This document shows positions 387 through 30,162 of a stretch of DNA of 37,368 nt, piece by piece; the stretch's first letter is position 1, and the number at the start of each line of letters is the position of its first letter. The position numbers and the translations under genes are program-made. The stretch comes from Vitrella brassicaformis CCMP3155 (taxonomy: Eukaryota > Protista > Chromerida): positions 1 through 37,368 of the forward strand of contig CDMY01000645.1 in the NCBI GenBank assembly GCA_001179505.1, given 5' to 3'. The notes below the pieces were generated by a model. The model was not told where the DNA came from and made no database searches. It saw nothing but the letters and a program-made list of their open reading frames with translations.

Positions 387-406
387 GGGTTCAGGGTTTA
401 GGGTTT
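387..406 (+). repeat. Interstitial telomere-like repeat GGGTTCA-GGGTTTA-GGGTTT
   Basis: Read directly from the sequence; matches the TT(T/C)AGGG telomere type; only about 3 units. Confidence 0.5.
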
Positions 407-532
407 GAATGTCCCATTGGCCCAGATCTTGATCGAATTGCACTATGCTCGCGAGATACTGTGCCGCGCGACTCGAGAAGCGCACCTTTCGAACCACCAG
501 CGGGCGCTTGACATCGCCATGAGGCCGAAAAG

Positions 533-562
533 GAAACCCTAAATGTGCACCTTTAGGGTTTC
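533..562. repeat. 30-bp near-perfect palindrome built from telomere-like arms (GAAACCCTAAA-t-GTGCAC-c-TTTAGGGTTTC)
   Basis: 533-543 is the exact reverse complement of 552-562; the central GTGCAC is itself palindromic; one mismatch (544/551). Confidence 0.8.
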
Positions 563-605
563 TTCCGTCGTTAGCTAGTGGGGAGATCGACATCCGTTGG
601 GACAG

Positions 606-4628: not shown

Positions 4629-5331
4629 TGCATCGTTGGAATGAATCATGTGGAAGTACATTGACTCATAGCGCAACGGCAGGCAGAGTCGGTCTCTCAT
4701 GCAATGAACTGTGTCGATCGACAACCCCTCAAATCAGGCGGAGTGAATCATCCATTCATTGACCATTGCAACACGCACACGCCCCCGCAGGTGTCCGTAG
4801 GAAGAGTCCCCTGCATGCCACCAAGTACGAAGCCGTCTGGCTTGTGTTGCGCTGTCGTGTGAGAGAGGCCTGGTGACTGTATGTACTGTCTATCCGTCAG
4901 GGAGGTCAGGTGGGTGTCCCGGCCAAGTCGGTGGGTGCACCCATTCATTAACTAGTGGCTGCACTGCACTGCCTGGTGTGACTGACACCCTACACGTGCC
5001 CTCACCAGACCCCTCACCTCACGCACACACGAGACTGACATCATACCACAGCCCATGGACCGAGACAGACACAAGGAACTCGCTCGGGAGACCGGCATCT
5101 CATCGCATCACACACACACATACATGCAATGCAACGCAACGCAACGGATGGATGGATGGCCCTCCATCAGTGCATTGCATTCACCGTCTGGGCAACATGC
5201 TTACGATACCCACTCGTTTTGTCGAATTAATTAGCCACTGCGTCTGTCTCCCTTGCTGTCTGTCTGTCTGGCTGCCTGTCTGTGCGCTGGTCAGGCGAAT
5301 TAAACTTCCTGCCAGCTGCAGGTACATCACA

Positions 5332-8274: not shown

Positions 8275-8454
8275 CTCGCCGCTTTCGACGCACACTAGGC
8301 CTACAGACGCCTCTTCTTGCACGACGCTTCTCGGGTGTGGCCAATGGCGAGCTTTTGCGAGCTCCAGAGTGCTTCGCACTCCAAAACCGCTCCCTCGCTT
8401 CGCATTCAGCCTCTCTCTCATCTGATCGTTCTTTTGCCGTATCAGATCTGTGAA
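8275..8454. promoter_or_regulatory. Putative bidirectional promoter GRASP/CSP41b (180 nt)
   Basis: Between divergent ATGs at 8274(-) and 8455(+). Contains GCGAGCT twice (8347-8353 and 8357-8363; TGCGAGCT at 8356-8363), CCAAT at 8341 and the small inverted repeat GAGTGC-ttc-GCACTC at 8367-8381. Confidence 0.7.
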
Positions 8455-9977
8455 ATGAAGTCGGTGGCAGCGCTGTGGTCCATGGCCCTCTGTGGCCATT
8501 GGCTCTGTGGCTCATCCCTGGCTTTCCTGCCGCCCTCCCCGCTCTCCAGCTCCCCTCTGCACCGCCTGAGAGCCAAGCACCGTCCCTCTGCAACCCTGAG
8601 GATGGCGGCGGACCAGCCGATGAAGGTGCTGCTCATCGGCGGCTCCCGCTTCTCGGGCCTCTATCTGTGGCGTGAGCTGCTGGACCGCGGTCATGACGTG
8701 ACGGTGTTCAACCGTGGCAAGACGGCCCTGCGGCCCATCCCGGGCGAGAGCGCCTCGGAGTTCGAGCGGCGCAAGAGCAGCACCAAGTTTGTCACGGGCG
8801 ACCGCAAGAACCTGGCCGACCTGCGCCAGGTGGCGTCGATGCAGTTCGACGCCATCTTCGACATGAATGGCCGTGAGGTGGATGAGACCAAGATGCTCGT
8901 GGACCTCTTCCCCAACCGCCTCAAGCACTACGTGTACATGAGCAGTGCGGGCGTGTACCTCAAGAGCGACGAGATGCCGCACCGGGAGGGCGATGCCGTG
9001 GACCCCAAGTGCCGCCACAAGGGCAAGCTCGACAGCGAGGAGTACCTCAGGTCCATCAACGCACCCTGGACATCCATCCGACCGACTTACATCTACGGTC
9101 CACTCAACTACAACCCGGTCGAGGAGTACTTCTTCGAGCGACTGGCGCAGAACCGGCCCGTGTGCATCCCCGGACATGGACAGCACCTCACCGGGCTCGG
9201 ACACGTCAGGGACCTCGCCAGGCAATTCGCTAACGTCCTCGGCAGGCCACACGCCGTCGGCAAGACCTACAACGCTGGCGTCAGTCAATCACGACACATT
9301 TAACGAACACATGAGCCACGCGACCCGACCCGGCAGGCAGAGAGCGATCGATGGAATCTGCATGTGTGGTGTGGTCAGGGTCTGGAGGCGGTGACGTTCG
9401 ACGGTGTGGCCAGGCTGTGTGCCGCGGCGATGGGCAAGGACCCGTCAAGGGTGGAGTTGGTGCACTACAACCCCAAGGACTTGGACTTCGGCAAGAAGAA
9501 GGCTTTCCCATTCAGACCACAACACTTCTTCACATCCATAGAGGTCCGCACCTGTGTCGGTCGTGTCACCCAGCGAGCCACACACGCACAAGGCATGGCA
9601 TACATCTCATCTCACCGTGTGATGCGATGCGATGCGATGCGATGCGATGCGTCGTGTCTTGTTGTGTCGGCGTCTGTCAGAATGCCATCCGTGATTTGGA
9701 TTGGCTGCCCGACTATGACAACCTCGAGGGCCTCAGGGACTCGTACCAAAACGACTTCGTGGTCAGTCTGACGGCATTGTTGGCGCACACCAGACACTTC
9801 ATTGTTTGCCTCACTGTGGTTGGTGCTTTGTCCATCCCTCCATCCCTCCATCGACGGATTGATTGATTGCTTGATCAGATCAAGCAGCGCGAGGGCAAGC
9901 TCAAGAACGACTTCGAGACCGACGACATCGTACTCGCAGCCGCAAAAAGAGACACGCGAGTCCCCACACTGGCGTAG
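8455..9977 (+). CDS. CSP41B: Plastid RNA-binding protein CSP41b (NAD-dependent epimerase/dehydratase fold), bipartite plastid-targeting leader
   Basis: [113 protein letters not shown] and [10 protein letters not shown]-terminus is a hydrophobic signal ending SLA-FLP, followed by a S/R/P-rich transit-like peptide. Four exons. Confidence 0.93.
9621..9650 (+). repeat. (GATGC)6 pentanucleotide microsatellite in a CSP41b intron
   Basis: Read directly from the sequence. Confidence 0.95.
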
Positions 9978-10571
9978 GTGGCTGACCACCTACATGATTG
10001 ATCTAACCTGTGTAAGTGACGTCCGAGCTGTGACAGTGCTTGCCTTTCATGTGTGTGTCCGTCCGTCCCATTTGGACGACTCAATGTATGTACAGAAAAA
10101 GGGGTGCAGGGGAGGGAGACGGGGAGAGAGGGAGGGAGAGAAGTTAGGCTTTCAACTGATTGATTGCTACATCTTGCTTACATCAGTTGAAAGAAAGTGG
10201 ATGGATGGATGGCTGGGAGTGCTTGAATGGAATTTTGATGCTGTCTGGGGAGGGGGGAGGGGGGGTTGCTGAGGCAATGAATTTTTCCGACCTCCAGGTA
10301 CCGAACGATTCGGACTGTTGTGACATGATTCAAGACAGCAACAGTCTGTCAACACACGACTAAGAAATAGGTCAGTCACTCGACTCCGTATCACCTTGAC
10401 CACCAAATCATGAACTCACCCAACAACACTACACTGACTGACTGACACAGTGAGTCCACAGGCACGAGGCTCCCTCCCTCCCTCCCTCACTTTAACAAGG
10501 CAAGCGAACGTCCACCCCGCAGCCCACCCCACAAGCCCTCCCTCTGTGCCCATTGCTTTGTTAGGAGATTG

Positions 10572-12621
10572 TTAGTATGGCGGCGGCACATATTCGCAGT
10601 GCCTAGTGCCGAGAAACTTGCCTGTTTTTGGATCGACCACCTTCTCAATGTCGGTCTCGAAGCAGAGGGCGAGGGTGGACCCCACGGCCATCACAAACAG
10701 ACACGCCAAGGCAACACGCCGGCCCGTCTGGTACCAACTGCACACACATGCAATCAATCAGTACACATACATAGCTAGCTACGTACACGCGTCCTCCCTC
10801 CCTCACTGCCTGCCTCTTTCCTCCTTACGATGGTTTGTTCTCCTGGTCGGCGTAGATGAGGAAAAGCAGAAAGAAACCAGCTGCACAATGACAGACAGAC
10901 CAGACAGACAGACATGGCCCAGCCGAAAGAGACAGAGGAGGCATTCATCTATCTCGTGGACAGCACTCGACTAGCAGCGTCCATGTCTCTGTCGCCTTGC
11001 TGCGATGTGGAATGGTGTGGTGTGGTGTAGAGCGTACCAAGTGCGCCCCCCAGGTGGCCAAAGTGATCTGCCGCACCCCACCCACACAGGCACATACAAG
11101 ATCGTGCCTCACGTGTCGGCACACGTACGCCTCTCACTCACTCACTCACTCACTCACCGAGATTTGTTCCCTGGGAGGTCACAAATAACATAAAAAACAC
11201 CAGATAGACGGCGAAGAATCTGCACCACACCACACCACACCACACCACACACAGCGGCACCGGATGAGTGAATGGGCGCCATTCATGTGGACGTTGCCCA
11301 TGCCCACATCCATCCCTCCACCCCTTGAGGCGCCAGTCGTACATGAGTTGGTAGATGGCTCTTGAGCGGCTCATGCCGGACAGCAGGTGCCATATCAGCA
11401 CCACCTCTGCTATCTGAACACAAGCACACTCACGCAGACACATGGGCCAATGGATGGATGGATGAATGGATGAGCACCGTGGGACGGACGAACTGCTGCC
11501 CACCTGCGCCCCGATGATGCCGAACCCAGATGTCGACGCGCCCACGGCAGTCTACAAACACAAATACATACGTACATACGTACATGCACGCAGCACGCAC
11601 ACATATGAGTGGTTGGTGCTGCCTGCCTGCGTGTGTATGTGGCTGCAGGGGTTGCGGGGCTTACGTTGCAGGGATGCACGGCGGTGGAGAAGAGGTTGGC
11701 CAGGATGCCACTCCCGAAGTATATCAGATGGAAACGACCTATCCCGTACCTACAACACGCACAACCACAACCACACGCAAAACACCAACGACTGAGGGGG
11801 CCAAACCACCGTGGCGAAGACGCCTTGAATTGTGCTTGTGTTGCTTGCTCACTTTTGTTCGACCTGCATCCCCATAGCGATCTGGACGAAGACGTTCATC
11901 TGACGCAATCAACACCACCCACACCCACACAGGCAGGCAGGGAGAGAAGAGGAGTGTATGTGTGCATCCTATCCTCCCTCCCTCCCTGCCGCCTGTTTGT
12001 TCAAGTGTTTGGTGTCTATCTTTGTGCTGTCTGCCTGCCTGCCTGACCAGCAGGTGGCTGAGGTTGGCGTGCAGGAATATGGGCATGAAAAGGCGCCACA
12101 CCTCGCCCCTCTGCAGATTGGGACCATAGGAACACCCGAATAGCAAAAGCGAATGCCTGCAGGCCGCCACGCGCGACACACACCACACCCAGCCGCCCCC
12201 ACACAGACAAACAGTCACACATGACAACACATCTGTCTGTCTGTCTGTCTGTCTGTCATCCGCCAAGTGTCTGCCTGTATGTGTGTGTTGTGACTGACCG
12301 TGTGGGCGCGGCTCTTTCCTGCCCCGGGATGAGAGATAGGAAGTAGACGACCATCTGGATCATGCTCAGCCACACTATGTGGAGCTGCCACGTGCAACCG
12401 GGAAAAAACATGTCCACAAACCTGCCACACACACATGCAATGCACAACCAACACGACGGACGCACCACAATGACACACATCAACCACCATCAGCCGTCCA
12501 TCGCCTGTTTGTCGTTGATTCACCTGATATCTCCCGAGCCGCCTGACGCCGCCACCGTGGGCAACGGCGTGCCTTCATTGCGCTGCTGCTGGTAATCAGT
12601 CAAACGATGCACGTTCGGCAT
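10572..12621 (-). CDS. Rhomboid intramembrane serine protease, apicomplexan ROM1/2/3-like
   Basis: About 9 exons: MPNVHRLTDY..., DMFFPG, EVWRLFMPIFLHANLSHLLMNVFVQIAMGMQVEQKYG, TAVGASTSGFG (catalytic Ser) and DHFGHLGGAL (catalytic His); stop at 10572-10574. Confidence 0.93.
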
Positions 12622-12832
12622 GGCGAAATGAGCAGCCGAGTCCGAGGCGGGCACAACCACTCACACACACTGCTCTGCTCTTGACTGACTTGAGTGGACG
12701 GAGGGGGGGCAGGCGTCCTCTCTTCCCTCTTTTCTCTTCTTGGGCTCGCCGGGAAAGCTCGCACGAGCGGACGAGAAGAGAAACCGCTCTTTCCGCTCTT
12801 TCTTGGGGAGGCGTCGTCAGGCACGCAGTATC
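12622..12832. promoter_or_regulatory. Putative bidirectional promoter rhomboid/EamA (211 nt)
   Basis: Between divergent ATGs at 12621(-) and 12833(+); AGCTCGCA at 12756-12763, plus a degenerate GGCTCGCC at 12743-12750. Confidence 0.65.
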
Positions 12833-15088
12833 ATGCCAGTATCAGCCCGTGCTTTGCGCGACGATGTGTACGTGTCGCTCGAGGACGGCCCGGCGTATCC
12901 CGTCGCCGAGGACGTCAAGGGGGCGAAAGCTCTACCTCAACACACCTCCACTGGACACGCGTGAGCAGAGCGAGCTATGAGGGAGGAACGAGGGAGAAGA
13001 AGTGAATGAGAAATGCCCGGCTACATACCTCTCTTGTGTGTGTTTCTGTTCACAGCTTGGACTCGCTCCTGCTGACTGACGTTCCTGAGGCCGCCAGTTC
13101 ATCCCTGCTGGTCAACCCTGCTGATCACCCCCTGCCCTCCGGCCGCCCCCGGTGCTTCGTTCAGGGTGTTTTGCTGTGCATTGGCTCCACTGTATGCTTC
13201 GCATCCATGTCGCTGTGCGTCAAGCTCACCGCTGACCACGGCATCAGCGCAGGAGAGACTATGTTCATCAGGTGGGCACGGGTCTGAGAAACGCTGCACT
13301 GCACATTTCGGGGCTGCCCCTGCGGGTGTATATGTGTTGATCTTATCCCTGTCAGGTGCATATTTCAGTTCTTCGTGACTCTGGCTTGTCTGTTTTATCT
13401 GCGGCTGGGGATACTGCCAAGCCAGAGCAGGGGGACCTTCAGGGTCAGGTGGTGGGTGCTCGCCAGAGGTGAGGGAGGGAGGGAGGAAGGAGATACGCAA
13501 CGCAACAGACAACCCGTGTGTGGGGCTTAACTTGCAGGTGTGGTGGACTTTCTAGGAGTGCTCATGTATTACTATGGGCTGAGCCAGCTGCAGTTGGGCT
13601 ATGCGACTGTTTTGTACTTCACGGCACCACTATTCGCTGGCCTCATTGCCCGATCGATGTTGAAGGAGAGCTATGGCATCATTGAGGCGGCGTGCGGGCT
13701 TGGGTGCGTTATTGGGGTGGCCATGACGTCACTCGGTAGTTGAGCCACCCCACGCCCCTTGGATGGATGGATGGATGGATGGATGTGGCTGTAATTGATG
13801 TTCACTACCTTGCTCAGGTAGTGAGAATTTCCGCACTATATCAACAGCTGAGGTGTGCGGCATCTCCCTGTGCCTCCTCGGCGCACTGTGCCAAGGTGAG
13901 TGGGAAGGACCTACCGCAGTGGACAGGCGGAGTGTATGCGTGTGGTGTGTGTTTCATTCAGGCCTGACTTACTGCATCATCCGCAAGTCAGTCAGCTTCA
14001 CATATGCTCATGGACGCTCACTCATACTCATTCACTCACTCACTCACTCACTTATGTCCTACCTAGGATTGGGAGGAAGGCGCATTACATGCAGCTGGTG
14101 AATTCATTCGCCCTCAGTGGGCTCTTCATCTCACCCCTGTTCATGCTGACGGTGCCGAGCCAGGCGCCCATCTCGCCCTCATCATTCACAGTGACCAACT
14201 GGTGTGACCTGCTCATGCTGGGCGCATTCGCCACGTTCGGCCAGATGTTGCTAAACATGGGCACGCAGCACGTCAAGGCCTGTCTGGCGTCCATCACGAG
14301 GACCCTGGACATTCCCATCTCAGTTCTTTTACAGGTGGGTCAACAGATACACACTGACACATGGGGAGCAGGGTAAAGAGAGAGTACTTGCTGGGCGGGG
14401 GGGGGAGGGGCATGGGCCTGTGTTTTGTCCCTTTGTCTGCCGTTGCTGCAGTGAGTGCTCTGAGGCACCGACACAGGAACGAAAGTAGACCTAATCTATC
14501 TGCTTTATCTTGTCTGCGTATCCTGCCGCAACAGAGAGGCAGACAGACAGACAGAGTCAGGCAGACGGGAACGGGGTGGGTCACCAAATTGTTGTCTCAT
14601 CGGTCTGGTTGGCTGTGTTGCGGGCGCCCTGTGAAGTCTTGCAGCACCAATCGAGGAGCGGCCGACAAGACGGGCCTGGCGCAGCGCGGAGCTACAGTCA
14701 GTACACTAGACACTCACTAGACAGTGCAGCCAGCGGCCCTTCGTCTATGTCGTGACGTGTTACCTACCATCTCCAGACAGATCTTCATCCTCCCACTGCA
14801 CTCTACACTCTCATTCTCTTCCATGAGATGCATTCGTTGGTCGTGGGTATGCTTGCTGTGCTGTGGCTCATGTCACACATACGATATTCCCTCAAGCCTC
14901 ATTGGTTTCTGTGGGCTGTTGTCTCTTGTTCAGTGGTGGTTCCTGCACGACGCACCCTCGTTCCTCAGCATACTCGGGTAAAACGGATAAGACACAACCG
15001 GCTCGCCTCAGCCTTCATTGCCTTCCTTTGGTGCAGGTGTTGTATGGTGATCTGTTGCTGCGGCGCGTCGGCTGTCCTGCGAAGATGA
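12833..15088 (+). CDS. EamA/DMT-family transporter (SLC35G-like, two EamA repeats)
   Basis: About 10 exons giving GVLLCIGSTVCFASMSLCVKL, GETMFIR, WWVLARGVVDFLGVLMYYYGLSQLQLGYATVLYFTAPLFAGLIARSMLKE, GISLCLLGALCQGLTYCIIRK, LGAFATFGQMLLNMGTQHVKACLASITRTLDIPISVLLQWWFLHDAPSFLSILG. The tandem five-TM-type repeats are typical of DMT. Confidence 0.9.
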
Positions 15089-15379
15089 GATGTCCCTTAA
15101 GATGGCCACTACATACTACATCAAATCAAGTGGCTGTGGCCATTAATTACCACAATGAGAGGATCGGCGTGGGTGAGGGCAGATAGGAGGCGTGGTTATC
15201 TACGTGGGTATCTACGAAGTTTTTTGGACCATTTCTGGGGACAGAGATGCCTGGGTCTGAGACGTCTTGCCTTAATTGAGTGTTTCATTTTTTCCTGGGC
15301 GACATCATTGATGGCAAGCTCTCTTCCCCTCGATGCTTCTCTGTCCCTATGATCGACCGTTGTCTTTTTCCTTCAACCC

Positions 15380-15679
15380 NNNNNNNNNNNNNNNNNNNNN
15401 NNNNNNNNNNNNNNNNNNNNNNNNNNNNNNNNNNNNNNNNNNNNNNNNNNNNNNNNNNNNNNNNNNNNNNNNNNNNNNNNNNNNNNNNNNNNNNNNNNNN
15501 NNNNNNNNNNNNNNNNNNNNNNNNNNNNNNNNNNNNNNNNNNNNNNNNNNNNNNNNNNNNNNNNNNNNNNNNNNNNNNNNNNNNNNNNNNNNNNNNNNNN
15601 NNNNNNNNNNNNNNNNNNNNNNNNNNNNNNNNNNNNNNNNNNNNNNNNNNNNNNNNNNNNNNNNNNNNNNNNNNNNNNN
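15380..15679. other. Assembly gap (300 N) abutting a poly-C run
   Basis: Exactly 300 N; CCC before and C12 after, consistent with a homopolymer-induced contig break. Confidence 0.99.
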
Positions 15680-17536
15680 CCCCCCCCCCCCGAATTGACC
15701 GAGTCTGTGTGCGCGTATGTGATGCACGCAGGGAGGTGTGTCGTGTCATGTCATCCTCTCTCCTTTGACCTTGCCTTTCTTTTTCTTATGTACACTCACT
15801 CACACACATCATTGAATATGCGCACATACACATACATACGTGTCAGTCCATCGTGTATGCCATGCCGTCACTGTGCCTGGCTGCCCTGCCAATCATATCT
15901 ATGTGTCTCGCTGCGAATTTATCGGGGGTCTGGCCGCTCAGTTGCATGATGCTAAGTGTTTTTCACGTATGTACCTCTCTGTCTGTCTTGTCTGTTTGTC
16001 TCACTTTGCAGACCAGACAGACGGTTTCCAGAGTGCGTGGGCTGCTGCTTGAGGATACACACGGGTGCGTTTTTAACACTGACTGACTGACTGTCCGGGC
16101 AGCTGCCTCTCTTCAACATGGCGTGCGCTGCATTTTCCAAAGCATGTATGTATGTGTGTGTGTGTATGTATCCTCGCGTGTCGTGTGGCGTCCGTCGTCT
16201 GCAATTTTGTCATTACGTAGAGAGGAGCAGGGTGAGTGCTGCTTGATGTGCGCAAGATGCAAGTGCCGTGTCAGATCAGACAGGCGGTCCGAACAGCGAG
16301 AGGGGGACCTCTCGCACAGCTATACACACACGGGGACAGAGAGGGAGGGGAGAGGGGGGGAAGGAGAGTTGTAGGAGAGTTGTTGGGTTCCAATTGCACG
16401 TTGTCGTGTCTTGGCTCTCGTGTCATATCTGCGTGGCTGTCTGGGTGTCTGGTGTTTGGGTGTTGTCTGTTGTCGCCGTAGAGAAGACACGAACAGCGCT
16501 AGATGGATCTAGCGTGAGCTGCGGTACCTATTTTTGCACGAGAGATGCAAAGCGTGGCCCCCCTCCTTCCCTCTCATGTGCTTGCCATGACCACATATAC
16601 GTATGTCTGTCTGTCTGTCTGTATTCGCGTGTGTGTACATATGCTTGCTTGTGAGCGCACAATGCCTCGCGTGTACAGTAAGCCTGATGTGCTTTTTCTG
16701 TGCGCCACATCTAGTTGCGCATGCCCCGTCCCTACCTGAACGTCTGTGTGCGCTCGACGGAAAAACATGTGTGTATTCATGTGGGTGTGGTGAGGGGGTC
16801 TCTGTCACCGGTGTTTGTCATGTGGTGCGTGAATGAATACCCCCTCTGCATGCCGGTCGCTTCAGACAAAAGCGACAGTAGCGGTATGCTGGATGGATAA
16901 CTACTGTGGGGTCGGGCGGAGGTATCTTCTCTGCCTAATTTCCCACAGCGGCCTCCTTCTCTTATGCGTGTCCGTATCTTGACTTGCCTGCTTGTCTCTC
17001 TCATGATGGAATCTACTGATTCGTCAAGCACTGCCTGCCTATGTGTGGGGGAGTGATGTGCAGGATGCACATGTCAGACTGTTTGCATGCTCCCAGACAG
17101 ATGTCTCTTTGTGACACCAGTCAACCGAACTACGCTCTCGCATATGTGGTCCTCGTCTCACACGAGTGTCTTCCCACACACTGCCTCAACGTCACGTACG
17201 ACAAACACGGCACACGGTGCATGATACCATAGCACCACTTCCCAATTAGGACGCAAATCCCTTCATTCCCATCTCAACAGGGCACAAAACCGTGAGCGCT
17301 TGATACTTGCATGACGACACTGATGACACAAGGAAAACGTTGCATGCCATGCACTCACTACTCTGGTACGAAAATTGGAAGAGCGCGTGAATACGATGCT
17401 ACGGTGCACTGGGACGCAGGCTGGAGAAATGACCTTCGCTACCCATCAATCCATCCATCCATCAATCATTCGCAAACGCACAAGACGGCACAAAACCACG
17501 TCTCAACCACCGATCCGAATCTCGGCCGTCACGTGC

Positions 17537-18765
17537 TCACTGCACTGAATTTTGTGCATAGAAGAAGTTAGCGCCGATGAGCTTCAGATCGTTCTTGTCT
17601 GCCCATGATGCCACCTGGGTGCACACACCGATCGATTTGGGCGGTAAGACCCTATGTAATACATCTCATCGTTCGTTCATGTACCTTGAAGCGGGGTCTG
17701 TCGAGCGGGGCCGTTGGCGTCTTGGCACTCGCCTCCTGGCGGTACAGCAGAAAGCAATACCGGTGCATTCCAGTCTTGGGCGGCGCTCCAGGTCCAAAGT
17801 ACGGCACAAGCGTCGTTGGATCCTTCAATTCGATAGCTGTGGGGATTGACAGGACACGACAAGTACAGCAAAGATAGGCAGGCCTATAGACGTGGGTGGC
17901 CGACTCACAGTCACTGGCGACGAGCCAATGCAGGAACTGCCCCTCGGTGGGGGCCTGACGGGATGGCGCGTCCGGATCCACCTGCAAGAATCGTCAAGTT
18001 AGCCATCATCTCCAGCTCATGCAACCAACCCTCTCCCTAGTCCACCATGGCCAAGATGTAGCTGCAACACATGAGAATCCACGCATGGATTCAATGCAAC
18101 CATAATCTCATCTGTGGGACCCTCTGTGGTCCTCCCTTCTCCGTTTCTTGCCTGCGTACCGGGCGTCTGGTCTCGGCATGTCTCCGATGATGATACTTGG
18201 GCGCTGCTTCGTCTCTGGAATGGAACACACACGGATGCCTGTTTCCGCTTGTGCCAGTGACGGTGTAGTCCACGCATACCATCCAGCGTCAGAGTGTTTC
18301 CGAACTCGACTTCCACATTTCTTGGGTACGAGATCTTGATGAACGTTTCCTTGTCAAGATCAGGCACCACATCTGACACACAAGCCGACCATTTCCCACT
18401 TGTGCAGACCAACAAAAGTGAGCCATCCTGTCAGTCCTCCTGCCGTACCTCCGATGACGCCCGAAGACCTCAGCAGCGACAGCTCCCTATCCCTCGGATC
18501 ACCCAGATCCTCCTTCTCCAATGCCTGCACACACACAGCAGACCACAACAGGTACGTCCCCACTGCACCCTCACAATCGCACCGTGATGAGGTCGGCGGC
18601 ATCGGCAGGTGCAACGATGGGCAGCACTCGAGGCTGCACAATGGCGGGAGGTGTGAGGGCAGAGGCATCGGCTGTGACGGGCGGCAGGTGAAAGGCAGCC
18701 GAACGGAGGCGAGCGCCCGTGGCAGTGCTCAGCAGCAGCGCCGCAAGGGCCACATGGGGCAGCAT
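17537..18765 (-). CDS. Phosphatidylethanolamine-binding protein (PEBP/RKIP family) with N-terminal signal peptide
   Basis: MLPHVALAALLLSTATG signal; [70 protein letters not shown] and LKLIGANFFYAQ. The DPDAP and GxHRY motifs are diagnostic. Seven exons. Confidence 0.93.
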
Positions 18766-19006
18766 CTTTGCGGGAGGAGAAAGATTGTACTGCAGAAACC
18801 AAGATTCGCCTGCAGATGACCGTTTTCTCCAGCCTCCGCGATGCTCAATGGACGTGTGAGCGCGCCAAAGTCACAGATCTTCGCTGGCCGCCGCGAAGTT
18901 TTCGGGCTTTCCAAGCTCGCAGAAAACGATCGGAGCCCTTCCTTCCACTTCCCGACCGGCATAACCATGATGCAAGCAAGAAGCGGATGACATAAGGGAG
19001 GCTGCG
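18766..19006. promoter_or_regulatory. Putative bidirectional promoter PEBP/ABM (241 nt)
   Basis: Between divergent ATGs at 18765(-) and 19007(+); AGCTCGCA at 18914-18921. Confidence 0.65.
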
Positions 19007-20223
19007 ATGAGGTGGATCTCTTCTGCATCTATGCCCCTGGCATACGTTGTGGTTGTGGCAGGAGCCTTCCAGCGCCCCCTGTCACCCGGGAAGCGACAAT
19101 TTCCCTCTCAGAGAGGGCAGCGGCTGAGGCACACACTGTCGATGGATGCGGCTGAGCCTGTGGCTGCGGCTGCCATGGCAGTCGACGGCAGCCTCCTTCC
19201 TTCATTCGTCGCATGCACCAGGTCGCACGCAACGCGCACAGAAACGCTTCACCGCTGCTGTGGTGTCTTTGATGAACGCGATGCAGTTTTCCTGTGATGA
19301 AGGGCTGCGAGGCAGCTTTTGAGCAGAGGTGGCTCGAGGCCGAGGAGAGGGCGCCGATCGCCAGCATAAAGGATTTCGCGGGGTTCATCCAGTTCTTCCT
19401 GCTAAAGGGACAGTACGATGAAGTCAACGACGCCACCGAGTACGTGTCGATGTCAGTGTGGAGGGACCGTGAGGCCTTCGAGGCTTTTCCCAAGTCCGAT
19501 TACTTCAAGCTGCGGCACGCTGCTGACTCGTCGCTGCCTCCGTCAACTCATGCTGCCGGGCCATCTGTGTCGATCTATGAGGCTGTGCTCTACGAGCCGA
19601 GAGCGGGAATGACGATTGAACAGCTCAAGGAAGGTGCCTTTATTGCCACCAACAGGTCCACACGGGCGTGCCAACTGGCTGACGGTGTCAGGTTCATGCC
19701 ATGGCGACTTGTTCTAGCGTGCAGGTTTGCTGTGGCCGCGGGCAGCCAAGACGCCTTCGAGACGAGATGGAGAGTGCGTACAGAAAGACACTTGTGCGTG
19801 AGTGCACTTGTACATGTCCCCATTGCTGCTTTGCATGCAGACTCGTGACCGCAACCTCCCGTCATTCCCAGCGTTTCGCAAGTTCATGCTTCTCCGTCGG
19901 GTGCCTCTGCCGCCCGACATGGGCGTGCCATCAAACAGCCCCCATCCGGCGTGCATCCAGCCCGACGTGACGCACATCTCGTTCACCGAGTGGCAGTCGG
20001 AGGCGGGCTTCGATGAGTGGCGGAACAGCCAGTCCTTCGCCAAGACCCACAGTGCCGCTGAGGACGCGCAGCCGAAGGGGCCACCGAAGGGTAGGTTTCG
20101 TTTACCTCTTCTAAAATGTGTCTGTGTGCATCTGTCTGTCTGTTTGCAGGTCCTGTGTCTGGCGAGCTGCGCGGGCCGCCGAAGCCGACCTTTTTCTCTG
20201 TGGTTCTGACGGAGGCCAATTGA
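19007..20223 (+). CDS. Tandem ABM-domain (IsdG/HmoA-like) monooxygenase, probable plastid-targeting leader
   Basis: Five exons. Leader ...YVVVVAGA-FQRP then an R/S-rich stretch. Domain 1: FVACTSFPVMKGCEAAFEQRW...FAGFIQFFLLKG...YVSMSVWRDREAFEAFPKSDYFKLRH. Domain 2: FIATNRFAVAAGSQDAFETRW...FPAFRKFMLLRR...HISFTEWQSEAGFDEWRNSQSFAKTH. Confidence 0.85.
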
Positions 20224-20567
20224 TCCAAAGACAGACGTGCACGGCAGGGGCGGCTTCGCACGTATGTTGTGATGGCTGTCGTATGGTGTGGGTGGTGCGG
20301 CATCGCCCTTGTCTGTCTTTATGAAGTTCATGATCCGGGTTATTTTGGCGTGGTGTGTTGCTGGTCTTCTATGGTCTTGTGACGTTGGATGGGCTGGCGG
20401 GAAGAGAAAAGAGGACAGACACAGTGGCCTGCCTAAACCGAGATACATACAGTGGATCAAGGAGTATCACTGCAGAGGTCCGAGGAAGAATGTGCCCGTG
20501 TAGGGCCATTAGAGGATGAGACGAGACCACAGAGCTACACACAGCGACCCCAACAGGAAAAGAAGCG

Positions 20568-23500
20568 TCACACTTTGGTGGTCGTGTTCATCCCTGGCAC
20601 CTGCAAGTATGCAAAATGACACCCACCCACAACGCACACCACTTTCTGCATCGCACATACATGCCATATCTTGACACCTTCGTAAATCGCTGGGCCTCAG
20701 GGTTGAACTCGGGCGTGCGAGCAAACTGCAGGAAGAGATTGGCCAGCCGCTGACGCAAACCTGAAAGAAGACCAATAGTGCAATACGGATGGATGTCTTG
20801 ACAATCTGCCATCTCGGTGAGCACCGAAGCGACCTTTGAGTGAGCTGTCCCTTCTCCCCCGATTGAGCATGTCGGCCTCCCTGTCTATCAAGTCAACAAT
20901 CTCGCGAGTCAAATTGCAATCAAACTCCTGCTCACCAACACACAAGAGACAGACACAACAGACAGACAGACAGACAGACAGAGAGACAGAGAGAGACAGA
21001 GACACCAAACACGGATGCAGACACCCTGTGCAACTATATGGTCCAGGGGTGTTATTGACTGACCGACCGACTGACTGACTGAATGACCAATTGACTGACC
21101 TTGACAGTCCACTTGACGTGTAGGAGCACATCGAGGCGCTCGTCGACAGTCAGGAGGGGCAGACGCAGACCGTTGTACAAATCCATCAACTCCTTTGCAC
21201 CTGGATTTGCGAGTGGCATCACTCGTTGACACAGACATGGATAGAAGATGCCGCCTGCGTACGTGTGGAGAATGGGGTGTGTACGATGGTGGCCTCCCCG
21301 TCAGACTGCGCCCACACCTTTGGGTTCGCCATCTGCACACACCACACAAGATGGTGGTACATTCGCCTTTCGTGTGTTGGCTGGGTGTTTACCGCTTCCA
21401 GCAGTCTCCTGACTTTGGCATCCCGGTTGGCATCGTGGGCCTGGATCTTCAACCGGTCGATCGTCTGACACAAGATGGCGGAACAGATCCACAAATGCAC
21501 GCACACGACACGCACACACGGTGAGTGCACACTCTGTCTTGCCGTGTACCTGGAGGAGCTTTGTCTCCTTTGCCAGCAGCTCTCTTAATGCCTCCTGCTT
21601 GGTTGCCTGCACGACCGACACAACACCCATGGTCACTCACATTCATGTCACGCCCGCCCACACCCACACACCTGGTCGAAGGTTGATTTTTTGATGCGAT
21701 TGGTCTCATTAATGCGCCACGCTGCACACATGCCGAAGACATTCATTGAGGAAGACGTCTGTCTGGATTCTTGTTTTCTGTCTGAGTAGAGTGTTACCTT
21801 CGAGTTCTGAGTAGAGCGTTTCGAAGTCTTCGTATGTCCGCGGGTGCATCCGCTTCCCGATCTCCCGCTTGTGACGCAGATCGGCCTCACGCTGCCTGCA
21901 GCAAACGGGCAACCAGCCAACCAGCCAGCCAGCACGATTCCTCCCCTCTCCCGCCCTCTAATATATCGCCCGATGGATGCATTGTACGTACAGTCTTTCT
22001 GCCTCTTCGCTTTCGAATTGAATGAGGTCGTCTCGCTGCTTGCGCATGCCCCTGACTCTCTTCCGAGCAAGCATACCCCTAGCCAACCGCTGCAGCAGCA
22101 GCACCTATAGGACACAATGGGAGATATGGCCAAGGCTAAATGGATGATGGATCAGAATTGTGACGGTGCTGACTTTCTGGCACTGGCGTTCGAACAGCTC
22201 TTCTGCGGTGAAGTACGCCTTGGGATGGAGGACCTTGTCGTGTTCGGTCGACACGTACACACTCACCGTCCTCTGATGAGTGAGGTGAACAAAGAAAGAA
22301 TGGGGATGACACAGATGCCGCGGCCCGTCTCGTCCATTCTCGTTTGTGTATCGTACCACTTGTGTACCGGCCTCTCGCTTAGGTTGGATGGAGCAGCTTC
22401 GATACTCGTACGTCTGGGTCTCACGATGATACTTGACGATGGTCTGAGCGGAAGGGACAGTAGAAGGAGACATGGATTTATCAGCCCCGTGTCTCCACGC
22501 AGCAGCACCGCATCCACCTGTGGTTTCTTGTCGATGGGTGTCTGGGTGAAGGCGTCATGGTATTCCACCCGAGTCTGCTTCTGACGGTACCCACCTGAGA
22601 CCAAACACACGCTGCAGTCTTCTTTTTGCACTCATCTGTGCCAGTGGTCTTCAGTCACCGACCGATGAAGGGTTTGGCCTCTGAAGCCTTCTCGATGTGC
22701 ACTCTCACGAGCTTCACCGCGCCCTGGCTGTCTGAAGCAAGAAGAGGCAGCATCGCACCCATAAATACCCCCTTTCTTCTGTCGCCCATTTATCAGTGGT
22801 GTCCGTTGTCTGTCGCACCCACCCACCCACCCACCTTGGCACTGCAGCTCGAGAACGTCCGGCATGACATACTCGGGCAGAGGCTGCTCCTCGTAGAAAT
22901 TCAGACGAAGCTGGCAAAGCACAAGGAACATAGAGTCAGACGATTTCCATGGCCTGGAGTGTTCCCTTTTTCCTGGTCCGTCTCGCACCTCGATGCCAAC
23001 CCGGTCTCCCGCCTTGAGCTGATACCCTCCCAGTGAGCGAGACAGATCCAGCAGACCATCAGCCGCTACAGCCCCGCTCCTACACACGCAAAACAGACAG
23101 TCGCACACACACACACACACACACACATATATAACAGCTGGATGACGTGTCTGTCTACGTGCTGTACGGCCGATAGATAGCTACATGCATACATAGATAC
23201 ATGCATACGCACATACGCACATGTTCATGAGGAATAGAGTGCCCTCCGGCAGGCTGAGCTCTGCCTCCAGCTCCCCCCGGATCTCTATCAGTGTCCTCTC
23301 AACGGGATAATACTTGGTCTGCCCGTAACCCTGGTTGACAAGGCAAGGGATGCACTTCCGTTCTTTGCCTTTCGGTGCACACATGCTCGCTCGGTGTCCG
23401 AACCTCAGGCAATATGATGAAATCGATGGCCACATTGCCTTCCGCACCGGCTGGCTCCTCGCCCTCCGGCGGCCCCACCCCCTCCTCTGCAGGCGGCATC

Positions 23501-23817
23501 TCACTTTCGCCCTCAACCGCTTCAGCCCCTTCCTGCACTGCAGATGCCTCTGCCTCTGCGGGGGGCTCCCCTTCCGTGACCGCTGGCTGCCCCTCCCCCT
23601 TGACCTCCGGCGGTTCTTGCGGCTCTCCCTGCTTGTCGTCATCCCCAGCAGGGGGGACCTCTTCTGTGCTTTGCCTCGGCTTGACTTCAGGGTCCTTGGC
23701 CTCCTCGGTTTCCTCCCCTGGCGTCTCCTCTTCCTCCATTCCATCTTCCTGGGGGGCGGCCGCAGGTTCGGCCTCCGCTGCAGCAGGGCCCTGCTCGTCC
23801 ATGTCCGCCGTATCCAT
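20568..23817 (-). CDS. IQUB: IQ and ubiquitin-like domain protein (IQUB/FAP253, flagellar radial spoke)
   Basis: About 15 exons: acidic N-terminus, Ub-like VAIDFIILPEG..., YVMPDVL, KPFIGGYRQKQTRVEYHDAFTQT, YHRETQT, IQ motif [73 protein letters not shown] and LRQRLANLFLQFARTPEFNPEA. The last exon and stop are tentative. Confidence 0.93.
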
Positions 23818-23818
23818 C

Positions 23819-23836
23819 GCGAGCTAATTAGCTCGC
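23819..23836. promoter_or_regulatory. Perfect 18-bp palindrome GCGAGCT-AATT-AGCTCGC in the 77-nt IQUB/Tudor divergent spacer
   Basis: Read directly; two inverted copies of the motif shared by all five divergent spacers. Confidence 0.75.
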
Positions 23837-23894
23837 AAAATGGGAACTGATCTGTGTCGCGTTGTACTAGTGGCCTCGTGGTGTGGCTTCCGGT

Positions 23895-25358
23895 ATGAGA
23901 ACCCGCAAAGCTGACTACCTGGCAGACGACGAGCTGGTCGGACAGGTGAGTGATCTGGCAGATACCACCACGGACGGCATCACTCTCCCCCGTGCCTTCC
24001 TGCGACTTTCAGTTTCTTGCAAAGTATTTTGGCCGCTCGAAATATTTTGGAATTGGTAAGCTTGGGGCTCCTCGCGAGGGTGGTGTGATGTGATGTGGCC
24101 TGGTTTGGTGTGCAGTGGTTCACAAGGAGTCGGTGCTGGACAAGAGTAATCGCGAAGTCGAAGCCTATTTGGTGGTATACACCGATGCTGAGACCGAGCA
24201 TCTCAGCGGTGGGGACAGATGATAGTTCTGCACACATGCAAACACACTTACAAACACACTCATCGATGCGTATGTGCGTGTGTGCAGGCAAGTCGATACG
24301 GTATGCGCACGGCGGGAAGGAGAGAGATAGGGAGCGACAAGACGTGAATCAGCGAGGCGTTTCTCGTTCCTGTGCTGTGCTGTGTTGGTCAGCGAAAAGA
24401 TCGCCCATGTGAGTGACGACGATGTGGCAATGCAGCTCAACAATCTGAGACTCGACCTGCGCAGGTAGGGTGGCACAACACATGGCCTCCCCCACCACTG
24501 CCCCTGTATGTGTATCCATCCATGCATCCGTTGATGTGTTGGTTGGTTCATTCAGCAAGGGCATCGACCTGGCGCACAGCCTGGAAGAGGGCCCTCCCAA
24601 GGACACGGCAGCAGCATCAGCCAAGGCTGACCCCGGCAGCGGCAGACGTGGCAAGCGCCAGCGCGGCGCCGCATCGGCGGCAGCAGCAGCGGCTGGCGCT
24701 GGTGCCAGTGAGGGGGATCATGAGGGCATTGCGGAGGAGGGCGAAGACGTGGACTCCGCAGGGGAGGAGGCCGATGACACCATGGGGGCCGCTGCTGCGT
24801 CGGCTACTGCCGCGGCTGCGGGGGGTGAGGAGGCTCAGCCCAAGAAGAAGAGACGCAAGCACGTGAGATATATCCATGAATTACGCATGCAGCCGAGTTG
24901 CCGGGTATTGTATTCAGGCTCCTCAGCCGCATGCCAAGTCGCTTTCTGCTGCATCTGCTGGAGATGAACGGGTCGTCGAGTTGAATGACATTCTCATGTA
25001 AGACGGGAAAGGTGCACAGGTGATTGACGCGTGGATCCATTTACGTGTATGCTGCTCAGTGGCGGTGACCTGCAGCCCCTGTCGGGTGACTGGACGGTGG
25101 AACGGCTCAAGGGCATTCCTCGAGACGACGTAAGACATACCTACCTACTAGAGACAGCCAGCCAGGCAGAAGAAACGGGTGCAACGACGTATGTACGAAG
25201 TCCTCCGTTTTGCCTGTGTCGATTCGATTTAGTTCAAGTTGATGCTCCAGAAGTCCGCCGCTGTGCCGCTGGTGGGTCAGCAGCTGGAGGCGGTGCTCCT
25301 CTGCTACGTACGGCTGCAGGAGATGGCCAACGCGGCTGCGGGGGGGCCGACCGGATGA
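23895..25358 (+). CDS. Hypothetical nuclear protein with N-terminal PTM/DIR17-like Tudor-like domain, acidic/Ala-rich linker and basic NLS-like segment
   Basis: MRTRKADYLADDELVGQFLAKYFGRSKYFGIVVHKE...EAYLVVYTDAETEHL fits the K-x-F...F-G-x-V...Y-x-V-x-Y-x-D-x-D/E-x-E Tudor pattern; PKKKRRKH; phase-consistent exons. The 3' exons are less certain. Confidence 0.6.
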
Positions 25359-25888
25359 ATGATGGCGGGATGCGTACGGGGCAGGGCAGGTTTTGCCGTC
25401 ACTTTGGCTGTCTGTACGTGTGGTGGGTGGCATTTTCTTCGTGGACACGTGTGCATCCTTCTCCATGAAAATGCATGTGTGCATCCTTCTGCATTGTGGT
25501 GCTGCGGTTTGGTGCTGTGGTTTATTCAATGTGTGGTGAGTGGTCCGGTCCCATGTACACTCGCTCAGAGACATGCTCACGTCCATTGACCTGTGATACG
25601 GTGCCTGTAGACTGCATTCATACCACCAACAAAGGAAGGGAACCAACACGGGCACACATGGGGCCAGCTCTTCGCAGGTCACAGACAGAGGCGCACATGA
25701 AGAGATCAGAGCTAACGTGCATACGTTCACTCGCGACACATGCACCACCGGCCAGCTGCAAAAAGGGCCGATGAAGCGCACCAAACACACGTATGCATGG
25801 CATGGATGCTCTCCATCCACATGGATCGAGGAGAAAAACACACCATCGACCCAATAAGACAAGGGCAGGGCAGGGCAGGGCGGCTCTG

Positions 25889-28390
25889 TCAGCCACCTGA
25901 CGCGTACGTCACCTGCACACACACACGGGAACCATGGCCAAGATCCATCCATCTACGTGTATGCACATCCAATGCAGCCGTGTGTGTGACGCTGCTCACT
26001 CACTGACTCACTCCGTGTTGGTCCACAAGATGCGATTCGTCTTCCATCATCTGCACCTGCAGCCGTGCCGCCGGCGAGCAGCTGGCGATGGCAGCCAGCC
26101 GCGCCGCCCGATGCACCTCCACAGATGGAGGAGCCGTCAGCCGAATGGGCATCGTCATGCGTCGAGTCAGCCGCAGCGCGGGGCTCTCGGTGCTGTCATC
26201 TCCCCTTGCTTCCATGTCGATGGGGTGCGACAGAGTGCGCTGGATGGGCTTGGAGGGCTCCTGGGGCTGCTGTTGCTGCTGGTGGTCCAGCTGCACCGAT
26301 TGGGGGAGGTGCTCGTGTGGTGCCGGCTGCTTTGGCGGCTTGTAAGTGCGGATTGAGTAGAGGCACATGAAGGTAATGGGGATGAGCAGGACGCCCATGA
26401 GCTCAAATGAGAGGGCGTAGTCGTTGTGCAGCAGCTCAACAAGGGGGGAGGCCACCAAGGGGCCCAGCATCAGCCCGCCGTTGAAGGTCTGCTCCTCCAG
26501 TGCGAAGGCCTTCCCGTGGTCCTCAATGCCCTCGTCGTGCAGCCATGAAGCTACAGACACACACAACCACACACAGATATGCAGGACCACAAGCACCTCC
26601 TTTGTCCCCTCTGTGCGCGTCTGTGGGCGTGTCAGTCAATGAGTCAGTGGCGTACATGCGAATGCGAATGCGCTGGTCTCGGCGGACCCCAGCCCCACAC
26701 CGAAGAGGGTCAGCACCGTCACCTGGAATGTCGACAGAGACGACGAGGCCAGGGAGAACCCCATCACAATCGTGCACAGCGCGCACCACGCCGACGCAAC
26801 CAAACAAAACATCATCGGACGCAGCAGAAACCTGCACACATGGGACCTCTCTGCAGACAGACAGGAGCGTGGTCCACTTGTGTGTGGACGTACGTACCTG
26901 TCTATGAGGAACCCGGTGGTCGGCCCGCAAGTGATCTTAGCGATGAATTGCGGCATGAACAGCGCGCCGGTGGCACTGGCAGAGAGGCCGTAGGCGTCCC
27001 GCCAATATAGCGGCAACAGGGCCTGTAGACAACGGCACACACATGCCACCACATGGTACATCCTGGCTCGTACACGTAAGTGCGGAGACGCATACCTGCA
27101 GAGCTGACGCCGCGGCCCACGGCAGAGTGACACACAGCATTGCCGTGATGAAATGGACATTGGCGAAGACGGCGTAACCCTGCCGCTTCGGCTTGTCCTC
27201 CTCTGTCAGCGGCACCACCAGATCGGGCAGGCTGCGCAACACACAGGTGATACGATCTCGTTGTCTTGTGCACAAATGGCCGTCGTCTCACTCACTCGTG
27301 TGCCAGCTGCTGCGCGTTGCTGCCCACTTCGGTGGGAAAGCGCCCGGTCGCCGCGATGAAGACCACGGCGGCCAAGGAACCACAGGCAAGGACGAGCATG
27401 ACGCCCCACACGCACTTGCTGCCAGCAGCGTCGTAGAGGAAACCTCCAGCTGCCGGGCCGACAATAGCGCCGACGTCACCCGTGAGCGCAATGCCCACTG
27501 CGGTGGCCCTGTTGGACTTGTCCTAAGGTGAATGGAGAGACACAAGCAAGATACAACATGCTTCACGCTGGCCAAGGCACGACACAAAGTGCCTCACGTG
27601 AGTGCGGGCCAGCGCCCCAAAGCCCGCCGGATACAAAATGGATGACGCAAAACCCTGACACATACAGACGGCAAGCAGAGACGATAATGCAGTGCACGTT
27701 TACGTGGCATTCAGTGTGTCACCTGCAGCACTCTGGCGACGATGTAAGACGCGAGGGAATCCTAAAGCACAGATGCACGCGGCACAGCGGTCAGCAGTGT
27801 ACTCGGGACGAGGCAGGTAGGCAGGCAGGCATGCACTCACCTTGATAAGGTAACACAGGCCACCCATCGCCAGCAGGGCGAACGGCACGACCAGCATCTT
27901 CTTCCACCCCACCCTGACCAACAGACAGCGACATCGATTGCAGCATTGACACGGCCGGCGTACCTGTCGATGATTATTCCACCTGAACCAATCCCAAACA
28001 GCCAGGGAAATCCTGGATGAATGCACGAATACACATGATCCCTTTGCTGATTCGTACCGATGGGCGCGAAACCGATGGCAATGATTGGTCGTGCGATGAA
28101 GATGAGGCTGTGCAGAACGGGTGGAAGGCTGAGCGTCCGGGGGCTGACCGTAACAATCACCGTCTGCACACAGAATACATAAGTGCCGATAGATGACACG
28201 ACCCCCAGGACGTCGAAGGAGTCAACCGTTCGTCGCATTGATGCTACCTGGTACATCATGTCGGTGAAACAGCCAAACCACACAACCTGCACCACACACA
28301 CACAACGTGAAGCACATCTTCGCATTCACACGGCCCTCGACTGCCTCTGCGCCTATATACAATGACGAGGCCGTAGTGAATGTCCTTCAT
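25889..28390 (-). CDS. Major facilitator superfamily transporter (SLC18/DHA1-like)
   Basis: About 12 exons: GLVIVVWFGCFTDMMYQ, motif A-like APIGGIIIDRVGWKKML, YIVARVLQGFASSILYPAGFGALA, GAIVGPAAGGFLYD, TGFLIDRF and GLMLGPLVASPL; hydrophilic C-tail. Terminal exon tentative. Confidence 0.88.
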
Positions 28391-28452
28391 CGTCGAAAGC
28401 AGATCAGATGCCAGATCTTCCCTTTTCAGCTCGCAGAGATCGCCTTGCTGAA
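28391..28452. promoter_or_regulatory. Putative bidirectional promoter MFS/hydrolase (62 nt)
   Basis: Between ATGs at 28390(-) and 28453(+); AGCTCGCA at 28428-28435. An in-frame upstream ATG at 28408 makes the hydrolase start ambiguous. Confidence 0.55.
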
Positions 28453-29833: not shown

Positions 29834-29928
29834 TATACGCGCATAGACGCAGCGTTGGCGGCTAGCTAGGACAATGAACGGTTGTCGTGCGTTTCATGAT
29901 CGGCGAAAGAGATGGACAGAGACACCAC

Positions 29929-29929
<1 letters not shown>

Positions 29930-29959
<30 letters not shown>
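29930..29959 (+). repeat. (GTGTAT)5 microsatellite
   Basis: Read directly from the sequence. Confidence 0.95.
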
Positions 29960-29960
<1 letters not shown>

Positions 29961-30162
29961 CAAATACAAATACATGCACCAACCGATACATATACAGACA
30001 GACAATCAACCAGCCAAATAATCGGCTCTCTCGACTGACAGACTCACCAGTTAACTGTCTCATCCATTGACTGACTGACTGACTGCTTCGCTCCTGCACC
30101 GGCGTTTCTGTCTGTCTGTCAGTTTGTTTGTTTGTTTGTGACTTGCTGCTGGTGTTGGTGCG

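Follow-up and report, generated by a model that had tools for sequence, protein, structure and literature searches.

This locus raises the question of whether a single short word marks the compact promoters shared by divergent genes in Vitrella. Chromerids are free-living photosynthetic relatives of the malaria and Toxoplasma parasites, and to our knowledge nothing is known about promoter definition in these algae. The Vitrella/chromerid genome paper reports only that head-to-head gene pairs are in excess (PMC4501334). The stretch of Vitrella brassicaformis DNA analyzed here (37,368 nt, the window) contains five divergent ATG-to-ATG spacers, located at 8275-8454, 12622-12832, 18766-19006, 23818-23894 and 28391-28452. 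Together they measure 771 nt, 2% of the window. The original prediction placed the 8-mer AGCTCGCA in all five, with one extra copy at 4586-4593. An exact search of both strands reproduced all six coordinates and strands and found no further copies. The copies start at 4586 and 8356 on the minus strand and at 12756, 18914, 23830 and 28428 on the plus strand.

Five of the six copies are inside the divergent spacers (binomial p = 2.3e-8). The total in the window is mildly high, 6 versus 1.58 expected, and a count of 6 is reached in two of 100 shuffles. What stands out is where the copies are, not how many the window contains. This modest count, and the post hoc discovery of the motif, would favor chance, compositional bias or a dispersed repeat as the source of the pattern. 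However, AGCTCGC(A) ranks first for spacer enrichment in an unbiased scan of all k-mers and passes Bonferroni correction over all of them. AGCTCGCA is at the top of 17,621 8-mers (p ~2e-8), and the 7-mer AGCTCGC is enriched with p = 1.9e-10. Against a shuffled background, no 8-mer common to all five spacers appeared in 5000 dinucleotide-preserving rounds. The flanks of the sites are unrelated, with a mean identity of 26.7% and a maximum of 33% over ±30 nt. This is the random level, indicating that the sites are independent, neither a repeat nor copies of one element. Chance, bias or repetition is effectively refuted for this window. A dispersed repeat or a promoter carried by a mobile element was specifically rejected, similarity stopping at the AGCTCGCA core in the ±30 nt compared. 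A 10-mer found in two spacers, CGTCGAAAGC, was judged to be shared by chance.

All six copies are located in 5' intergenic DNA. Every divergent spacer contains one, and none is found in the six convergent (3') regions of the window. The DNA around an assembly gap at 15380-15679 looks non-coding and separates two convergent genes; the closest copies are 2.6 kb and 3.2 kb away, and the right flank of the gap opens with a run of 12 C. The gap touches no AGCTCGCA site; its unread letters could conceal a copy.

The flanking genes are largely those named in the original prediction. GRASP, CSP41b-like, EamA, PEBP and ABM genes are clear by Pfam or homology. Matches for rhomboid, IQUB, MFS and hydrolase are weak, and the Tudor assignment of the IQUB partner was not confirmed in the same check. 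Coding strands were resolved by a self-trained codon model together with Pfam; GC3 alone did not resolve them. Local tblastn covered 8001-10107. The best CSP41b match in the protein collection is from Chromera velia, with 63% identity, and an exact look-up of eight ORFs of the window in this collection found none of them. Among the Logan contigs, ORF 8344-9300 is present on one 2.3-kb DNA contig only, and ORFs 8455-9300 and 36473-36796 have no record. Relatives found in a scan of JGI metagenomes have at most 64% identity, and all are from other algae.

The site at 4586-4593 (minus strand) is in a tandem, head-to-tail arrangement behind the 3' end of the GRASP gene. As predicted for the extra copy, it marks the 5' end of another gene: a minus-strand gene with a ubiquitin-like domain starts at ATG 4544, 41 nt downstream of it. 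This single tandem case is in the sense orientation. The 180-nt spacer between GRASP (minus strand) and CSP41b (plus strand) carries two direct minus-strand copies 10 bp apart at 8346-8363, near its middle. They are AGCTCGCA at 8356-8363 and AGCTCGCC at 8346-8353; the second GCGAGCT reported near this site is real and occupies 8347-8353. The pair is 81 nt from the GRASP ATG 8274, to which it is in sense; the distance to the CSP41b ATG 8455 is 91 nt. Between rhomboid (minus) and EamA (plus), a spacer of 211 nt contains AGCTCGCA at 12756-12763 on the plus strand, 69 nt before ATG 12833, and a weaker copy, GGCTCGCC, is found close to it at 12743-12750. Between PEBP (minus) and ABM (plus), the spacer measures 241 nt, and AGCTCGCA at 18914-18921 on the plus strand is 85 nt before ATG 19007.

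The 77-nt spacer next to the IQUB-like gene contains an inverted pair, GCGAGCT-AATT-AGCTCGCA, at 23818-23837, in which each copy faces outward to its own gene. The left copy (AGCTCGCG, minus strand, a 7/8 match) adjoins the candidate ATG 23817 of the IQUB-like gene, and 57 nt separate the right copy from ATG 23895. This right copy and the GRASP site share the longer 11-mer TTTTGCGAGCT, present at 8353-8363 and as the reverse complement of 23830-23840, as had been noted previously. The last site, at 28428-28435 on the plus strand, is in the 62-nt spacer between MFS (minus) and hydrolase (plus), 17 nt before the hydrolase ATG 28453. This start codon is anchored by a conserved HGG block in exon 1.

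Two additional promoters define the limits of the pattern. A probable seventh promoter at the left end of the window (423-453, plus strand) is located upstream of a plus-strand gene starting near 613. It shows the same ordered pair of words as other promoters of the window, CAGATCT at 423-429 being followed by TGCTCGCG at 446-453, only a 6/8 variant of the main word and part of the palindrome CTCGCGAG. The tandem promoter of an RRM gene (ATG 30163) contains no copy, indicating that AGCTCGCA is neither obligatory nor universal. The original prediction of a promoter element or general-factor site is partly supported, the non-random, 5' intergenic placement in divergent rather than convergent regions being confirmed and positioning relative to the transcription start still a prediction.

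The sites were also compared with previously described elements. No TATA box (TATAWA) is present in any of the five spacers. TTTTGCGAGCT does not fit the E2F site TTTSSCGC, and the sole TTTSSCGC in the spacers, at 18869, is apart from the motif. No Rfam family matches over the AGCTCGCA sites at the gathering score (1-10107 and 10144-37368 were searched). The word had not been recognized as a published motif, and full-text literature searches, both for AGCTCGCA and for promoter motifs of Vitrella or Chromera, agree with this, returning no description, only primers and unrelated work.

AGCTCGCA is a promoter motif, a familiar kind of object. We think that it is probably, with AGCTCGC as its core, a promoter-proximal element near the transcription start sites (TSSs) of TATA-less, mostly bidirectional promoters, and the putative site of a sequence-specific, probably general nuclear factor. 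The motif is 17-85 nt from the start codon of the nearer gene, which would put the TSSs no more than a few tens of nucleotides away. In the hydrolase gene the ATG follows after 17 nt and the whole spacer measures 62 nt, and the TSS must therefore be near the motif. Copies occur on either strand, once or twice per promoter, and are single, in direct repeat 10 bp apart or in an outward-facing inverted pair. Such arrangements are typical of protein-binding sites on DNA. Together with the variable distance to the ATG, they fit a factor-binding site better than a core element at a fixed distance. We infer that the word acts as DNA rather than RNA, and that it binds protein. AGCTCGCA usually faces the nearer gene, an orientation preference that is not significant with six sites, and a purine/pyrimidine switch around it is marginal (p = 0.05).

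A candidate general ('housekeeping-type') nuclear factor would bind AGCTCGCA and thereby mark very short TATA-less spacers that serve one or two genes. Once bound, it may help to recruit or position the transcription machinery, or may keep the spacer nucleosome-free for both genes. ApiAP2 proteins are the largest transcription factor family in the lineage of Vitrella; linking them to AGCTCGCA is pure conjecture.

The same distances allow a different reading, in which the word itself serves as initiator or forms the 5' end of the mRNA. The start of transcription would then be at the word or just upstream, for example at the AATT center of the inverted pair, and the word would be a core initiator or an RNA-level signal in the 5' leader. 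The gaps between motif and start codon (17, 41, 57, 69, 81 and 85 nt) are plausible as 5'UTR lengths. The inverted copy that adjoins ATG 23817 and the hydrolase ATG 17 nt away also suggest that either the motif is transcribed or the 5'UTR is tiny. At four of the six sites no sense ATG is found between the motif and the start codon, and sense ATGs precede the motif by 20-42 nt. Upstream ATGs at 8344, 28408 and 4628 are in frame, and some copies may thus be transcribed and even translated. However, upstream ATGs nearer than the start codon follow the motif at the other two sites (18967/18970/18987 and 23840), although the predicted distance of 25-93 nt to a sense-strand ATG holds. In three divergent pairs no copy is in sense to the partner gene, and both copies at 8346-8363 face one gene.

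Transcript data bear on the initiator or leader reading from both sides. Putative RNA runs contain 0.83 of the sampled words of 8300-9400 versus ~0.735 expected from exons alone. This excess corresponds to about 100 nt of extra transcript, which would reach the motif, but it is weak, and intron retention would explain it equally well. In contrast, Chromera CSP41b RNA contigs from four runs start 0-2 nt before the ATG and carry no upstream DNA, hinting at very short leaders and not 90-nt ones. Overall, an initiator or leader signal is possible but unlikely, and we favor a factor-binding site.

A role other than initiation was also considered, in which AGCTCGCA, at gene 5' ends, separates divergent units as a boundary or insulator, excludes nucleosomes, or marks an origin or a recombination site. 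Its position in divergent spacers, in many cases close to the midpoint, and its absence from the tandem RRM-gene promoter are consistent with such a role. General boundary factors of other eukaryotes also bind near the TSSs of housekeeping genes. On the other hand, a sense copy is found at the tandem promoter at 4586 as well, and no sequence feature separates the pattern from ordinary promoter activation. We consider this role very unlikely.

A second word, CAGATCT/CACAGATC, accompanies AGCTCGCA, and the order of the two is fixed in four promoters. It is found as CAGATCTGTG at 8443-8452, 3-12 nt before the CSP41b ATG; as CACAGATCT at 18872-18880, on the PEBP side and preceding the main motif by 33 nt; as GATCTGTG at 23849-23856, 11 nt downstream of the main motif; and as CAGATCT at 28412-28418, on the MFS side and preceding the main motif by 9 nt. 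The two words could form a lineage-specific, orientation-coded promoter grammar that replaces TATA/Inr in chromerids. AGCTCGCA would face one gene and CAGATCT(G) would indicate the region in which its divergent partner starts, and a dedicated candidate factor pair would read a nucleosome-free spacer of 60-240 nt in two defined directions. We regard this more elaborate proposal as doubtful.

If one word marks most compact promoters, it would provide a handle for purifying the factor and aid the prediction of gene starts and the correction of gene models. It would also assist the design of expression cassettes, and make it possible to ask whether the promoter logic of apicomplexans was inherited or arose anew.

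Similarities to known promoter systems are partial in each case. Like TATA and Inr elements, AGCTCGCA is probably near the TSS and possibly directional. Unlike them, it has no AT-rich TATA sequence, and its spacing to the start codon varies between 17 and 85 nt. A TATA-like core element would be at a constant distance of about 25-35 nt upstream of the TSS. The gaps before ATG 28453 (17 nt) and ATG 23817 (0 nt) speak against such a -30 position in these two genes, and in the hydrolase gene, with only 17 nt between motif and ATG, it seems hardly possible. Apicomplexan promoter words and ApiAP2 sites, such as TGCATGCA, GAGACGC, GTGCAC and CACACA, are similarly short (6-8 bp), lineage-specific and upstream of genes in the relatives of Vitrella. 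We know of no ApiAP2 or apicomplexan word that AGCTCGCA matches. Such known words are mostly associated with particular regulons or stages, whereas AGCTCGCA is present at nearly all divergent promoters of the window. CACACA and GTGCAC are among the apicomplexan words named in PMC11417369.

The palindromic CGCG element TCTCGCGAGA drives divergent transcription from vertebrate TATA-less promoters (Mahpour et al., 2018; PMC6192621), and AGCTCGCA might be a diverged half-site relative of it. Both are short GC-rich words in TATA-less promoters of housekeeping-type genes with CTCGC as a common core. The left-end promoter has a GCTCGCGAGA-like, nearly palindromic sequence at 446-456. Bidirectional transcription from promoters lacking a TATA box, the reported role of the CGCG element (PMC6192621), agrees with the context in Vitrella, where the spacers lack TATAWA and five of six copies are between divergent genes, divergent transcription being deduced from gene orientation. 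However, the CGCG element is a 10-bp palindrome reported to be conserved in vertebrates only (PMC6192621). The six full copies in Vitrella are AGCTCGCA with non-palindromic flanks, oriented as single, direct or inverted sites, and CGCG is absent from them, occurring only in the 7/8 copy at 23818. Of three CTCGCGAG occurrences in the window, the one at 448 alone belongs to a promoter. Descent from the CGCG element is thus extremely improbable.

Sites of housekeeping promoters include TATCGATA, the Drosophila DRE bound by DREF, Motif 1 bound by M1BP, BEAF sites, and those of the yeast general regulatory factors Reb1 and Abf1. As proposed for AGCTCGCA, one short word is located near the TSS of many compact, often divergent, TATA-less promoters, at variable distance and in variable orientation. 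The Vitrella word differs from these in its sequence and in belonging to the alveolate lineage.

The 8-mer AGCTCGCA (core AGCTCGC) is a real motif, and within the window it is specific to 5' intergenic DNA. It occurs six times in the 37,368 bases, at 4586 (-), 8356 (-), 12756 (+), 18914 (+), 23830 (+) and 28428 (+), exactly the positions and strands of the original prediction, with no further copies. The core is found ten times. Two of its four additional copies are second copies within motif-bearing spacers (8347- and 23819-), and the other two are at 12970- and 20162-.

Genes were mapped with a self-trained codon model, Pfam scans of open reading frames and a local tblastn search with the Chromera CSP41b protein. 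Their strands alternate, creating five divergent spacers between start codons. GRASP (ATG 8274, -; Pfam) faces a three-exon CSP41b-like gene (ATG 8455, +; homology). The GRASP protein starts with MGGSQ, as is usual for myristoylated GRASP, and the closest protein match of the CSP41b-like exon is from Chromera velia (63% identity). A rhomboid-like gene (ATG 12621, -; weak Pfam match) faces EamA (ATG 12833, +; Pfam), and PEBP (ATG 18765, -; Pfam) faces ABM (ATG 19007, +; Pfam). An IQUB-like gene (ATG 23817, -; weak Pfam match) faces an unnamed gene (ATG 23895, +), for which the proposed Tudor label was not confirmed. MFS (ATG 28390 or 28325, -; weak Pfam match) faces an alpha/beta-hydrolase (ATG 28453, +; weak Pfam match, with a conserved strand-HGG block in exon 1). 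The spacers measure 180, 211, 241, 77 and 62 nt, reproducing the predicted total of 771 nt. A ubiquitin-like-domain gene (ATG 4544, -; Pfam) lies head-to-tail behind the GRASP 3' end. Pfam also identified an RRM gene (ATG 30163, +), and the codon model placed genes with no named product from about 613 (+) and, one or more, at 33.6-36.7 kb (-).

Each divergent spacer contains one full copy of the motif (5/5), as predicted. The sixth copy, at 4586, is in the sense orientation, 41 nt 5' of the ubiquitin-like-gene ATG. No copy is found in any of the six convergent regions in the window. A boundary-type role for the motif is a minor alternative.

Every 6-, 7- and 8-mer, reverse complements pooled, was compared between the 771 nt of spacers and the remaining window. 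AGCTCGC(A) ranked first at all three lengths, with p = 1.9e-10 for AGCTCGC (Bonferroni threshold 7e-6) and 2.3e-8 for the 8-mer (threshold 2.8e-6). When the spacers were shuffled 5000 times with dinucleotides preserved, the most spacers sharing any 8-mer was two in 4442 shuffles, three in 552, four in five, and never five. The excess over the whole window is modest, six copies versus 1.58 expected, and six were reached in 2 of 100 shuffles. Chance recurrence is a minor alternative. The flanks within 30 nt on either side of the motif share a mean identity of 26.7%, indicating independent sites rather than copies of one repeat. Short tandem repeats (CACA, CAGA, ATCC, GTCA) are numerous in introns and intergenic DNA throughout the window, for example at 7338-7400 and 29930-30140, and supply its top 8-mers. 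Public short-read contigs end at such repeats, and one (L005) begins inside one.

The motif is arranged in several ways. In the GRASP/CSP41b spacer (8346-8363), two copies follow one another in the same direction at a 10-bp period. At 23818-23837 it forms an outward-facing inverted pair, GCGAGCT-AATT-AGCTCGCA, in which the two copies face their respective genes and the left one directly adjoins the candidate ATG 23817. The other sites are single copies. Read along AGCTCGCA, the next gene's ATG follows after 41, 81, 69, 85, 57 and 17 bases. On the opposite side, the divergent partner's ATG is 91, 134, 148, 12 and 37 (or 102) nt away. No TATAWA was found in the divergent spacers. AGCTCGCA does not match the E2F consensus, and no Rfam family matched in the parts of the window searched (1-10107 and 10144-37368).

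A second word, CAGATCT(G)/CACAGATC, accompanies the motif. It is located at 423-429, 8225-8232 (within GRASP intron 1), 8443-8452, 18872-18880, 23849-23856 and 28412-28418. All three window copies of CACAGATC are within spacers (p = 9e-6, borderline after correction), and CAGATC is the fourth-ranked 6-mer for spacer enrichment (p = 2e-5), after three sub-words of the main motif. In four promoters CAGATCT is found upstream of the main word and toward the partner gene (423/446, 8443/8356, 18872/18914 and 28412/28428). A fifth has the opposite order, the main word coming before GATCTGTG (23849). The 423/446 pair, in which the main word is a 6/8 variant, TGCTCGCG, probably belongs to a seventh promoter, located at the left end of the window. 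This region (385-560) also contains three telomere-type repeats, TTTAGGG/AAACCCTAA (397-405, 534-542 and 552-560), similar in appearance to plant promoter 'telo-boxes'; a fourth TTTAGGG is at 37162. The CCAAT-box-like GGCCAATGG adjoins the motif in two promoters (414-422 and 8339-8347), with a third copy at 11445.

The motif is present only in 5' intergenic DNA, is used on either strand, with some copies paired as direct or inverted repeats, lies at variable distances from start codons and has a companion word. We therefore consider it probable that AGCTCGCA serves TATA-less, mostly bidirectional promoters as a promoter-proximal DNA element, and that it is a putative site for a sequence-specific factor. 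An ApiAP2 protein, as the original prediction suggested, is a conjectural candidate for this factor.

The main alternative, an initiator or 5'-leader element, depends on where transcription starts and is considered less likely. The hydrolase starts at 28453 or at the in-frame 28408, and its conserved fold begins about 13 residues past 28453, so that either transcription starts no more than a few tens of nucleotides from the motif, or the transcript includes it. In CSP41b, the in-frame ATG 8344, just past the motif, would put 37 residues before a typical signal peptide, which suggests a start between 8347 and 8454. A sense ATG between motif and start codon is absent at four of the six sites and present at two. 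RNA-like runs contain 0.83 of sampled words from 8300-9400, and exons alone predict about 0.735 (a difference of ~2 SD, which is not decisive). This is compatible with a ~100-nt leader reaching the motif, and equally with a retained 99-nt intron. Chromera velia CSP41b-like mRNA contigs from four separate RNA-seq runs (L001-L004) start 0-2 nt before the ATG, which points to very short leaders, contrary to a ~100-nt leader, or to assembly breaks. Together, the start-codon, leader and contig evidence makes a fixed TATA-like -30 role unlikely. The in-frame ATGs 8344, 28408 and 4628 lie upstream of the accepted starts with no intervening stop; if they were used, the motif would be coding. Automatic gene models may thus have wrong starts at these places.

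The RRM gene lies in tandem with the upstream hydrolase gene across a gap of only about 330 nt, almost all microsatellite (TGTGTA, ACAGAC, CTGA, GTTT). Its promoter region (29834-30162) contains neither the main nor the companion word. This gene may have a different promoter type, or be expressed by read-through from the upstream gene. The assembly gap (15380-15679) falls between EamA and PEBP, which are convergent, in DNA of non-coding appearance. The 12-C run on its right flank (15680-15691) likely caused the break, and ORFs spanning it are artefacts of the N run. The nearest motif copy is at least 2.6 kb away, and the motif finding is unaffected.

The motif had not been recognized as a published one, and full-text literature searches on the word and on Vitrella/Chromera promoter motifs likewise returned nothing relevant. 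On promoters, the genome paper goes no further than an excess of head-to-head pairs (PMC4501334). The motif is probably undescribed. The vertebrate CGCG element TCTCGCGAGA activates divergent transcription at TATA-less promoters (PMC6192621), and AGCTCGCA could be a diverged half-site of it. However, a palindrome test of this minor alternative failed in the window, and the core CTCGC is the sole part that the two have in common. As a probable promoter motif, AGCTCGCA belongs to a familiar class.
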